This document shows positions 3,417-57,710 of a DNA stretch of 64,000 nt, piece after piece. The stretch is taken from positions 930,001 to 994,000 of the forward strand of contig OZ218965.1 of NCBI GenBank assembly GCA_965112735.1, written 5' to 3'. Every line of letters starts with the position of its first letter. Position 1 is the stretch's first letter. The translations under genes were made by a program, and so were the position numbers. Below the pieces are notes generated by a model. The model ran no database searches, was not told the origin of the DNA, and saw only the letters and a list, made by a program, of their open reading frames with translations. Source of the DNA: Phaeosaccion multiseriatum. Its lineage: Eukaryota; Protista; Ochrophyta, other classes.

Positions 3417-4280
3417 ATGAACATCATGCACGTGCTCTTGGGCTTCATCGCCGCCCTCGCCCTCGTCACTGGCGCCACCGTGCCGCTCGTCAAGGAGGAT
3501 CAACGTGAACTGTAAGTGCTGGAAGGATTGGACATGCACATTTGTGCGCCCGCTCTTTTCTTCCTTTGTCTCTGCGTGCCTGTGTCTAGCTTGTCTGGTC
3601 TCTTGCGCTCGACACTGACTTCGCTTCGCGTCTTCTCCTCTCCCTTCGTCACCTCCTCCTGTGGCTACGCGTCGCGCCTCTCTTCTTCCTCTTCCGTGAC
3701 CTGCGCTCGACACGGACTTCGCTTCGCGTCTTCCTTCCTTCCTCTCTCTTCGTCACCTCCTCCTGTGGCTACGCGTCGCGCCTCTCTTCTTCCTCTTCCG
3801 TGACCTGCGCTCGACACGGACTTCGCTTCGCGTCTTCCTTCCTTCCTCTCTCTTCGTCACCTCCTCCTGTGGCTACGCTTCGCGCCTCTCTTCTTCCTCT
3901 GCCGTGACCTGCGCTCGACACTGACTTCGCTTCGCGTCTTCCTCTCTCTTCGTCACCTCCTCCTGTGGCTACGCTTCGCGCCTCTCTTCTTCCTCTGCCG
4001 TGACTGGCCTCGACTCGGACTCGTTCGTCTTCCTCGTCGCCTCTGGTACGCCTCGCTTTGGCCGTTTTTCCCTCCTCGCGCTCCTTTCCACACGCACAGC
4101 TGGTCCGGCTCCAGCTCTGGCTCAGGCTCCGGCTCAGGCTCTCGCTCAGGCTCCTGGCGCTCTGGGTCCGGCTCCGGCTCGTGGGGCGGATACCGTGGTT
4201 GGGGCAAGAAGTACGGCCACAAGAAGGGTTGGGGCTACGGACGGGGCTTCTACGGCGGGTATGGACGCGGATGGTGGTGA
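3417..4280 (+). CDS. Secreted RxL-processed Gly/Ser/Trp/Tyr/Lys-rich peptide precursor, copy 1 (type A, 91 aa); exons 3417-3511 and 4100-4280
   Basis: ACCACC-ATG start, phase-2 intron GTAAGT...CACAG, and AATAAA at 4306. Spliced translation: [91 protein letters not shown]. Confidence 0.85.
3605..4000. repeat. Intronic minisatellite, ~104 bp unit x ~4, in the copy-1 intron
   Basis: The unit GTGACCTGCGCTCGACAC...GGCTACGC.TCGCGCCTCTCTTCTTCCTC starts at 3696, 3800 and 3904, plus a leading unit at ~3605. Confidence 0.9.
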
Positions 4281-4912
4281 ACGGTCCCACAGCCCCGGAA
4301 ATTGAAATAAAATGATATTCAAATGAGATACGTACTATTTATCGGTGTGTTCTTCTCCCGGTCCCGCCTACACCGTATCGACTCTGTGCTGGCACTCATT
4401 ATCCTGTGCATGAGAAGGCTAGAAAACAATCTCCGCTGCCTCCGCTCCCCTTCACGGGCCCATCCCCGGCGAGTAGAAGAAGACAAACGAGGTCGTCTAA
4501 CTCCCACATGCAGCCCTGCTCCTCTCCATTCCCTCTTCAGTTCAAGACTCAAGGCACTCCACATCGCCCTCTATAACGCCAATCACAACCTTCTGTTCAT
4601 CTCACGTCGGGCCATCTCTCTGAGCCCGTCGGCGCACAAATAGTCACTCAGCGGTACCTGCGGAACCGCTTCGGCAGCGGGACCTCGTCCCCCACGCGGC
4701 GTGCCTTCCTCTTCTTCGCTGCACGACGGCTATTGGGCTGCTCCCCCCCTTACCCTTACCCCTGTGCACGAGCAGCGGCAGCAGGGCTAGAGGCGGTGCG
4801 AGACTTCCTCCCTCCTCGCTTCTTGCCCTTCCCTCCCGTGCACGCCTCGCCCTCCTCGCGGCCATTGCGGGGGAGGCCTTCTTGAGCGCGCGCTGTCTCT
4901 CTCCTCAGCCTC

Positions 4913-5232
4913 CTCCCTCGCTGCTGATGCGCGCATGCCTCTCGCACATGCCGTTGCACTTCCCTCCGCGCGCCAGCTTATCACACTCTCCAACGCGGCA
5001 GCGCTTGACCTGAGCCCCACGAGAAATGCAACCGCCTCCTCGCTGCACCTGCTTTTTCTTTCTGGCACCCCTCTATGCGGCAGCGCTTCACCTTCACACA
5101 AACGCCTCCGTTCTTCGCATGCTTGCCACAGCCCTGCACAGAGCAGAAGCGGGCCCCACCAAGTCGACAGCAAAGCCCTTCGCGTAATTAAAGCTTAGCG
5201 CACCTTTCCACTGTACATGTCCTATTTCCCAT
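4913..5232 (-). pseudogene. Decayed WRKY19-like zinc-finger repeat gene (CxxxGCxKxAxxGGxCxxHG)
   Basis: Homologous to 8884-9188 and 55961-56283. The fragments CSVQGCGKHAKNGGVC and KRCRVGECDKLARGGKCNGMCERH are broken by frameshifts. Confidence 0.6.
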
Positions 5233-5685
5233 GATTGCCTGCGGCCAGACACTCGCCTTCCCCTTCTTGCTCGAGGTGCGGAGGGAGAACCACCTGACGC
5301 CTTGACCTCGGGGCTACTGCTCGCTCGTGTCGAAGGCCTCAGCGCTTCCTCCGTCTGCGTCTTGGGCACACGCAAGCTGAGCAAGTGAATCACAGCCAGA
5401 TGGATGGAAGGCATTCGAAAGTCAGGAACACAAGGGACTTACAGGGTTAGAGTTGCATCGGTTGGAAAGGGAGGAGACAGTGACGAGAAGGACCTTTGTC
5501 AAAGAGGGTTGAGGCGACCAGCGTCCTGAACGAGGGGAGAGTTCGGGGTGCCTTCTTACAGGGGGGGGGGGGCAGCAGGCCTGTATCATAGTGTGTGTGA
5601 CATTCCTGTACAGTTACAGAAGATTCATTCACTTGCAAATCTATTGACTGTAGAGTTACTTAGCTCTGACTACCCCTATAGGCTC

Positions 5686-55960: not shown

Positions 55961-56283
55961 ATGTGGGAATATAGGAGATGTACTGTGGAAAGGTGCGCTA
56001 AGTTTGAATTCCGCGAAGGGCTTTGCTGTCGACTTGGTGGGGCCCGCTTCTGCTCTGTGCAGGGCTGCGGCACGCATGCGAAGAACGGTGGCGTTTGTGT
56101 GAAGGTGAAGCGCTGCCGCATAGAGGGGCGCCAGAAGCAGTGCAGCGAGGAGGCGGTTGCATTTCTCATGGGGCTCAGGTCAAGCGCTGCCGCGTTGGAG
56201 AGTGTGATAAGCTGGCGCGCGGAGGGACGTGCAACGGCATGTGCGAGAGGCATGCGCGCATCAGCAGCGAGGGAGGAGGCTGA
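55961..56283 (+). pseudogene. Decayed WRKY19-like zinc-finger repeat gene
   Basis: RRCTVERCAKFEFREGLCCRLGGARFCSVQGCGTHAKNGGVC..KRCRIEG / GGGCISHGAQVKRCRVGECDKLARGG, split by a frameshift. Confidence 0.7.
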
Positions 56284-56949
56284 GGAGAGAGACAGCGCGC
56301 GCTCATGAAGGCCTCCCCCGCAATGGCCGCGAGGAGGGCGAGGCGTGCACGGGAGGGAAGGGCAAGAAGCGAGGAGGGAGGAAGCCTCGCACCGCCTCTA
56401 GCCCTGCTGCCGCTGCTCGTGCCCAGGGGTAAGGGTAAGGGGGGGAGCAGCCCAATAGCCGTCGTGCAGCGAAGAAGAGGAAGGCACACCGTGTGGGGGA
56501 CGAGGTCCAGCTGCCGAAGCCGTTCCGCAGGTACCGCTGAGTGACTATTTGTGCGCCGACGGGCTCAGAGAGATGGCGCGACGTGAGATGAACAGAAGGT
56601 TGTGATTGGCGCTATAGAGGGCGATGTGGAGTGCCTTGAGTCTTGAACTGAAGAGGGAATGGAGAGGAGCAGGGCTGCATGTGGGAGTTAGACGACCTCG
56701 TTTGTCTTCTACTCGCCGGAGATGGGCCCGTGAAGGGGAGCGGAGGCAGCGGAGATTGTTTTCTAGCCTTCTCATGCACAGGATAATGAGTGCCAGCACA
56801 GAGTCGATATGGTGTAGGCGGGACCGGGAGAAGAACACACCGATAAATAGTACGTATCTCACCTCCCTCCCTCCTTTTCTCCACCCATTGTAGGTTTTCA
56901 CTTGAATATCATTTCATTTTATTTCAATTATCCGGGGCTGTGGGACCGT

Positions 56950-57710
56950 TCACCACCATCCGCGTCCATACCCGCCGTAGAAGCCCCGTCCGTAGCCCCA
57001 ACCCTTCTTGTGGCCGTACTTCTTGCCCCAACCACGGTATCCGCCCCACGAGCCGGAGCCGGACCCAGAGCGCCAGGAGCCTGAGCGAGAGCCTGAGCCG
57101 GAGCCAGAGCTGGAGCCGGACCAGCTGTGCGTGTGGGAAAGGAGCGCGAGGAGGGAAAAACGGCCAAAGCGAGGCGTACCCAGAGGCGACGAGGAAGACG
57201 AACGAGTCCGAGTCGAGGCCAGTCACGGCAGAGGAAGAAGAGAGGCGCGAAGCGTAGCCACAGGAGGAAGTGACGAAGAGAGAGGAAGACGCGAAGCGAA
57301 GTCAGTGTCGAGCGCAGGTCACGGCAGAGGAAGAAGAGAGGCGCGAAGCGTAGCCACAGGAGGAGGTGACGAAGAGAGAGGAAGGAAGGAAGACGCGAAG
57401 CGAAGTCCGTGTCGAGCGCAGGTCACGGAAGAGGAAGAAGAGAGGCGCGACGCGTAGCCACAGGAGGAGGTGACGAAGGGAGAGGAGAAGACGCGAAGCG
57501 AAGTCAGTGTCGAGCGCAAGAGACCAGACAAGCTTGACACAGGCACGCAGAGACAAAGAAGAGGAAGAAAAGAGCGGGGGCACAAAAGTGCATGTCCAAT
57601 CCTTCCAGCACTTACAGTTCACGCTGGTCCTCCTCGGCGAGCGGCACGGTGGCGCCAGTGACGAGGGCGAGGGCGGCGATGAAGCCCAGGAGCACGTGCA
57701 TGATGTTCAT
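56950..57710 (-). CDS. Secreted RxL-processed peptide precursor, copy 5 (type A, 89 aa); exons 57710-57616 and 57124-56950
   Basis: ...[69 protein letters not shown]. The intron has ~3 minisatellite units, and AATAAA lies downstream. Confidence 0.85.

Follow-up and report, generated by a model that had tools for sequence, protein, structure and literature searches.

In diatoms, the term RXL domain denotes the stretch that follows the signal peptide, ends in R-x-L and is removed by an unknown protease; R-x-L motifs are found again at repeat ends in silaffins, cingulins, frustulins, and silacidins (PMC5525289, PMC4557024), and RXL domains are also present in the silicanin homologues of Parmales (PMC10328945). 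Screening for silaffin-like proteins uses repeated KXXK motifs (X = S or G) placed 1–6 residues apart and pentalysine clusters, that is, 5 Lys within 12–14 residues (PMC5501833), and in cingulins the KXXK-containing regions alternate with Trp- and/or Tyr-rich regions (PMC4557024). Here we describe a family of short two-exon genes in a stretch of 64,000 nucleotides (nt) of Phaeosaccion multiseriatum DNA (contig OZ218965.1, positions 930,001–994,000, hereafter the window), whose predicted products begin with a putative signal peptide, continue through a short acidic piece to R-E-L, and end in a Gly/Ser-rich, strongly basic part.

Gene structure and coding status

Local BLAST finds in the window exactly five copies of a 95-nt exon 1, numbered g1 to g5, and four copies of exon 2; g1, g2, g4, and g5 are intact, and g3 has exon 1 only (Table 1). 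Exon 2 occurs as type A in g1 and g5 and as type B in g2 and g4. When the exons are joined, g1, g2, g4, and g5 give predicted products of 91, 171, 104, and 89 amino acids (aa), respectively, each ending at a stop codon. The introns of g1, g2, and g5 open with GTAAGT and that of g4 with GTGAGT, all four close with CACAG, and all four stand in phase 2, with the Leu codon of R-E-L split over the junction. The lengths of exon 2 in the four intact copies (181, 421, 220, and 175 nt in the same order) all leave a remainder of 1 when divided by 3; the remainders of the intron lengths (588, 245, 296, and 491 nt) are not shared. A preliminary description of this DNA had proposed the five loci with their strands, junctions, phase-2 intron, and the truncation of g3, and reading and splicing the sequence reproduced all of its coordinates, so that the observation itself is confirmed. 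The list of open reading frames (ORFs) shows, as had been stated there, only off-frame shadows of these genes in the Ala/Pro and Pro/Glu frames, for example at 7516–8112 (+) and 7520–7885 (−).

Three diverged lineages, type A (g1/g5), g2, and g4, have retained the start codon, the donor and acceptor sites, and phase 2, and in each a stop codon immediately follows the aromatic block. Base differences within the conserved motifs leave the amino acids unchanged: all three in H-A-R-T-L between g2 and g4 (CAT/CAC, AGG/AGA, CTT/CTC) are synonymous, as are both of those in W-G-G-Y-R-G between g1 and g2. The variable sites of exon 1 comprise 4 synonymous and 2 non-synonymous ones. The hexamer GGCTCC builds the Gly-Ser arrays of exon 2; of 37 occurrences of its single-base variants, 29 affect a wobble position of the Gly-Ser frame, and the remaining array variant, AGCTCC, still provides a Ser codon. 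Three tandem GGCTCN units were matched 43 times in the 64-kb window, every time inside one of the four exon 2s and on the coding strand (43/43), with 0.04 matches expected from shuffled sequences; the arrays always lie downstream of a signal exon on the same strand and nowhere else in the 64 kb.

Insertions and deletions in exon 2 keep the frame, the intron has some whose length is not divisible by 3, and many short ones appear where the 3′ flanks are aligned. The preliminary description had taken the frame-keeping of exon 2 as an argument for selection. The lengths do keep the frame, but as evidence of selection this is weak because the repeat units of 6, 15, and 39 nt preserve the frame by themselves; the synonymous-only motif differences, the conserved splice and stop structure, and the wobble variation appear to be better support for the Gly-Ser frame. 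The Ala/Pro frame of exon 2 was rejected as a coding frame: it needs a non-AG acceptor, it has no conserved stop, and in it the hexamer variants lead to P/L/Q/R changes.

Upstream of the genes, in a region that is 93–96% identical in the five copies, a TTTTATTT box is located ~105 nt before the ATG and ACC stands before the ATG; in g1 and g5, AATAAA lies downstream of the stop codon. The box may be TATA-like and the ACC Kozak-like, and together with AATAAA they would be consistent with a normal small gene. Taken together, these features of the sequence make it likely, in our estimation, that the family loci are real genes.

The indexed sequencing runs that contain the locus come from one 2024 sample, the kind of which is not stated, and were aligned to positions 3300–8200. 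Their cover is even over introns and intergenic DNA, and it includes contigs that cross 4099/4100 unspliced. Because the cover behaves like that of DNA, we read the runs as DNA libraries that neither support nor refute splicing. Their contigs also contain intron variants for which the window has no matching copy, e.g., with 21 other letters at the 7601/7519 joint, which fits with additional members of the family at other places in the genome.

Table 1. Positions of the family's features in the window, counted from its first nucleotide.
Feature	Position	Strand	Description
g1 conserved upstream region	3300–3416	+	TTTTATTT TATA-like box, putative 5′ untranslated region, ACC before ATG
g1 exon 1	3417–3511	+	putative signal peptide, then 13-aa piece to R-E-L; Leu codon finished by exon 2
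g1 intron	3512–4099	+	GTAAGT..CACAG, phase 2; contains a 104-nt tandem repeat in 3.8 copies
g1 exon 2, type A	4100–4280	+	Trp-punctuated Gly-Ser tract, Trp/Tyr/Arg/Lys/Gly block, TGA
g2 exon 1	7294–7388	+	identical to exon 1 of g1 and g3
g2 intron	7389–7633	+	phase 2
g2 exon 2, type B, two modules	7634–8054	+	long Ser/Gly tract, three KKYGH units, H-A-R-T-L, second Trp-Ser-...-WGGYRG module, TGA
g3 exon 1 only	51168–51262	−	homology stops ~30 nt into the intron
g4 exon 1	53768–53862	−	A-E-E-D-Q variant of the acidic piece
g4 intron	53472–53767	−	GTGAGT..CACAG
g4 exon 2, type B	53252–53471	−	Trp-punctuated Gly-Ser tract, 14-aa Gly/His/Trp/Tyr tail, TAG
g5 exon 1	57616–57710	−	98.9% identical to g4 exon 1
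g5 intron	57125–57615	−	104-nt repeat count one below that of g1
g5 exon 2, type A	56950–57124	−	same as g1 except for one 6-nt Gly-Ser unit

Predicted products and the search for relatives

The N-terminus of the family has a 12-residue hydrophobic core (Kyte–Doolittle 2.9 over 9 aa) followed by the small residues T-G-A before the likely cleavage site. The acidic pro-piece comprises 13 residues up to R-E-L, ATVPLVKEDQREL, with a different 13-residue version in g4 and g5, and R-E-L occupies residues 30–32 in all copies. The predicted mature parts, counted from the residue after R-E-L, have 57–139 aa, an isoelectric point (pI) of ~10.7 and a net charge of +7 to +13; they consist of 31–38% Gly, 23–42% Ser, 9–23% aromatic residues, and 5.0–7.0% Lys, and are free of D, E, C, N, P, V, I, and M. 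As encoded, before any internal cut, the exon-2 products amount to 6–13 kDa.

The C-terminus of type A is a dense Trp/Tyr/Arg/Lys/Gly block, and type B has KKYGH repeats followed by H-A-R-T-L. Within the mature parts, Ala, Thr, and Leu are confined to A-R-T-L, which is a distinct motif because these residues are absent from the rest. After R-T-L, the module of g2 restarts in complete form (Trp-Ser-His-Ser, Gly-Ser tract, WGGYRG), and g4 continues with a 14-aa tail of Gly, His, Trp, and Tyr. The layout given in the preliminary description, namely, a signal peptide, a short acidic piece, RxL, a Gly-Ser tract, and an aromatic-cationic block, is present in the spliced models, and the computed composition of the four copies bears out a mature part with no Asp, Glu, or Cys. 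An oomycete-style RxLR reading of R-T-L-R in g4 was set aside, as the motif stands 88 residues in, dEER is missing, and the host is an alga.

The search for relatives of these products returned no homologue. Word-indexed searches of a collection of 5.8 billion clusters with residues 19–59 of g1 exon 2 and with residues 64–139 of g2 exon 2 gave nothing, with length ranges that admitted the full spliced products, and the window's own proteins were not returned either. A phmmer search with g1 exon 2 against 1.84 billion protein representatives gave 0 hits, and the best score in the ESM Atlas was 0.69, to unnamed bacterial clusters. JGI metagenomes yielded nothing, whether searched by protein patterns or by a degenerate DNA pattern of exon 1, and an exact look-up of the 32-aa ORF of unspliced exon 1 found it not on record. 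As far as these searches reach, the family thus appears to be unannotated and orphan; distant relatives would be hidden by composition filters and by fast repeat evolution. The undescribed status that had been claimed for the family therefore holds for all the protein collections searched, as its hidden status does for the ORF list, and short two-exon genes of low complexity can evidently slip past both ORF tracks and public protein sets.

Copy history and genomic setting

The family lies in an inverted segmental duplication of ~18 kb, in which ~2.0–19.8 kb (+) matches ~58.0–46.3 kb (−) with 94–98% identity. The arms flank a central region of ~26 kb, and each contains a tandem unit of ~3.9 kb. 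The copies are arranged with mirror symmetry, type A outermost and type B next, and the truncated g3 is confined to the right arm.

The copies have a mosaic structure. The exon 1 sequences of g1, g2, and g3 are identical and those of g4 and g5 nearly so, and the upstream haplotypes group in the same way (g1 = g2 = g3, g4 with g5). By intron and exon 2, g1 groups with g5 (99–100%), and g2 has a looser affinity to g4 (~90% over the alignable parts, with large indels). Because the grouping by exon 1 and upstream region conflicts with that by intron and exon 2, the sequences point to gene conversion or recombination that was limited to the 5′ end. The homology of g3 to the family ends near 51138. 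This breakpoint (~51138) adjoins an ankyrin-like/hairpin segment, and the same segment occurs at 14878–17460 without a preceding exon 1.

The 104-nt tandem repeat of the type A intron lies at 3636–4021 in g1 and at 57191–57518 in g5, and the introns have a strong pyrimidine bias on the coding strand. On the opposite strand, ~225 nt upstream of each family ATG, there is a conserved ATG with a signal-peptide-like ORF, MAMVYSAAIAVLLAMLRLPNAVGHA, and then GTGAGT; these ATGs are at 3193 and 7063 (−) and at 51476, 54093, and 57913 (+). The ORF may be the exon of a head-to-head partner with a common promoter region, and no convincing candidate for its downstream exon was found.

Elsewhere in the window, a long poly-Glu/Asp/Lys ORF at 38283–40550 (−), with a poly-Ser shadow on the plus strand, is unrelated to the family and accounts for the strong GC and AT skew there. 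A 354-aa ATG-initiated ORF at 22241–23305 (−), in a stretch of lower GC, has no Pfam hit; among the Atlas clusters nearest to it are HTH/DDE transposase-like families, with weak scores of 0.71–0.87, and it may be a transposon remnant. The Pfam scan of 18 long ORFs of the window gave weak ankyrin and Atrophin-1 matches alone, all under Pfam's curated cut-offs, and tRNA and Rfam searches of the window gave no matches. A tblastn match of the type A tail at 15758–15922 is a purine-rich repeat and was rejected as a family member.

Possible roles and comparison with known systems

The reading that we favour, tentatively and at a little less than an even chance, is that these are real nuclear genes that lack annotation and belong to a lineage-restricted family amplified locally, and that their products are secreted pre-pro-peptides forming wall, matrix, or adhesive material. 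The signal peptide would bring the product co-translationally into the endoplasmic reticulum (ER) and be removed. Ochrophyte proteins bound for the plastid carry an aromatic residue or Leu just behind the cleavage site of the signal peptide; since no Phe, Trp, Tyr, or Leu stands directly after the likely site here, routing to the plastid is unlikely and the secretory route would be taken. The 13-residue acidic piece would probably be clipped after R-E-L by an RXL-type endoprotease like that proposed in diatoms, and type B products would probably also be cut after the conserved internal H-A-R-T-L. The Gly/Ser spacer tract is a likely site of O-phosphorylation or O-glycosylation. Disordered basic peptides (+7 to +13) would thus be set free outside the cell, where the aromatic-cationic "stickers" separated by Gly/Ser "spacers" could, through cation-pi, pi-pi, and electrostatic contacts, lead to self-association, condensation, and binding to wall polymers or anionic surfaces.

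Several observations weigh against this reading. The signal peptide was called by inspection and not with a dedicated predictor, and the function is assigned purely by analogies of composition. When the wobble excess is counted by distinct hexamer types, it is 4/7, which is not significant. The Ala/Pro frame of exon 2 is likewise open in all four copies, so that the openness of a frame by itself says little. The upstream DNA is conserved as much as the exons in all copies, and in g1 and g5 so are the intron and the 3′ flank; because noncoding DNA is equally conserved, much of the similarity would reflect recent duplication or gene conversion and not coding constraint. The sequencing runs show no joints at 3511/4100 or 7388/7634, though they are DNA-like, and the family protein is in none of the collections searched. 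Most of these points would suit loci that make no functional product at all, being untranscribed or decaying relics of duplication in which the Gly-Ser frame is a by-product of a hexamer microsatellite beside a signal-peptide-like ORF. Such an origin would also agree with the absence of RNA evidence from the runs, with several open frames whose indels are predicted by the repeat units to be in frame, and with the clear truncation of g3. It does not sit well with three diverged lineages that keep the start codon, splice sites, phase, and stop, with differences in conserved motifs that are synonymous only, or with arrays tied exclusively to the signal exon, and we consider it unlikely, with a small chance that is still worth taking into account.

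If the genes are real, a wall, matrix, or adhesive role has a serious rival in host defence, with the cationic tails rich in Gly, Tyr, Trp, Arg, and His acting as antimicrobial peptides, membrane- or wall-active and diversified under microbial pressure. The exon-2 products are small, strongly cationic, and aromatic- and Gly-rich, the prepro exon is conserved and the mature exon hypervariable, and the genes are locally clustered; the last two features have a parallel in the nlp-29 cluster of C. elegans, which is induced by infection, diversifies through local duplication, and is thought to code for Gly/Tyr-rich antimicrobial peptides (PMC2453101); in addition, the tail of g4 after R-T-L recalls the Gly/His-rich shepherin I (PMC10698721). 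On the other hand, a neutral Gly/Ser tract of 27–66 residues in the mature part is atypical of such peptides, the cationic part could not be neutralised by so short an acidic pro-piece, similarity in sequence to any known family was not found, and the diversification is mostly repeat slippage with positive selection not demonstrated. Because the long neutral Ser/Gly tract stays in the mature part, we prefer a role in a wall, a matrix, or adhesion to one in defence alone, which has, in our opinion, a rather low probability. The long unbroken Ser-Gly arrays of a predicted secreted product would also suit core proteins of proteoglycan-like wall polymers, in which the Ser-Gly repeats carry polysaccharide chains, as they do in animal serglycin, and the aromatic-cationic tail anchors them to anionic wall polymers; as the Ser-Gly sites lack flanking acidic residues and there is neither homology to any core protein nor evidence for the transferases needed, this is the least probable of the explanations considered. 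Nearly as improbable is a silaffin- or cingulin-like part in biomineralisation, with phospho-Ser tracts and cationic tails templating silica in a wall, scale, or cyst. The signal peptide, RXL, Ser-rich region, basic repeats, and RxL at module ends match silaffin and cingulin precursors (PMC4557024, PMC5525289), and the high Ser content and the Lys cluster of g2 fit as well; judged by the criteria for silaffin-like proteins (PMC5501833), however, KXXK is absent, Lys is low (5–7%), and the pentalysine cluster is missing in 3 of the 4 copies. We regard a wall, matrix, or adhesive component as most likely and true silaffins, like any biosilica role, as unlikely.

A broader proposal, which we put forward only as a rather unlikely one, is that a non-diatom and apparently non-silicifying ochrophyte uses the diatom-type signal peptide/RXL pathway to release self-assembling polyampholyte peptides in which a Ser/Gly tract bearing modifications is joined to an aromatic-cationic tail. 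If it is true, the precursor logic of silaffins would be older than silica biomineralisation and not depend on it, and the orphan family would constitute a new class of peptides in algae, condensate-forming or adhesive. If the products are expressed and cut at RxL, RXL pro-peptide processing would extend beyond the silica proteins of diatoms and Parmales to unrelated ochrophyte cargo. The family also offers a compact natural "sticker–spacer" set, small as encoded, that is open to testing for condensation, adhesion, mineral templating, and antimicrobial action.

Among animal systems, the nematode NLP/CNC peptides resemble the family in being small, predicted secreted, rich in Gly and Tyr (also Trp and Arg), and encoded in a tight cluster that diversifies through local duplication (PMC2453101). 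No relationship to them was detected in the phmmer search with g1 exon 2 described above. Their processing sites are dibasic and not RxL, and to our knowledge they have no Gly-Ser tract. Shepherins arise by cleavage of a Gly-rich precursor that bears a signal peptide. Shepherin I consists almost wholly of Gly and His, with one Tyr (PMC10698721), and its composition is close to that of the 14-aa tail that a presumed cut at R-T-L would free from g4; unlike the family, shepherins contain GGH repeats, no Trp or Lys, and no Ser tract, and there is no homology. The squid beak proteins (HBPs) and the mussel-type adhesives rich in Gly, Tyr, Lys, and Trp are comparable in that the family's products are likewise predicted to be secreted and disordered, with aromatic and cationic stickers in Gly-rich spacers. 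In the extracellular HBPs, modular His/Tyr/Gly repeats that resemble the type B tail drive a pH-dependent condensation (PMC6884462). These are animal proteins, however, and the family is without GHGxY repeats, so that the likeness is one of composition only.

The closest parallel in precursor layout is with the diatom proteins with which we began, and here the earlier comparison with silaffins and cingulins is valid as a likeness of layout alone; the earlier interpretation as a whole is partly supported. As in those proteins, the predicted products are Ser-rich, basic, repetitive, and of low complexity. The Ser content of 23–42% exceeds, and the Lys content of 5.0–7.0% falls short of, the thresholds of ~18% Ser and 10% Lys that Scheffel et al. 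reportedly set in 2011 for silaffin-like proteins. No copy has a KXXK motif (X = S or G), the lysines standing as KKYGHKK, and a pentalysine-like cluster is present in one copy, g2, with 6 Lys within 12 residues compared with at most 4 in g1, g4, and g5. A Trp/Tyr-rich region as in cingulins is present (9–23% aromatic residues), without the KXXK regions and the alternation that characterise cingulins. Unlike silaffins and cingulins, the products share their charge with Arg and His, are far smaller, show no sequence similarity to these proteins, and belong to an apparently non-diatom host. We therefore do not file the family as silaffins or cingulins. What it appears to have in common with the diatom RXL precursors is their layout: an N-terminal ER signal peptide of tripartite form, as judged by inspection, a short piece that leads to R-x-L (R-E-L in all copies), and a further RxL at the end of an internal module, R-T-L in g2 and g4.

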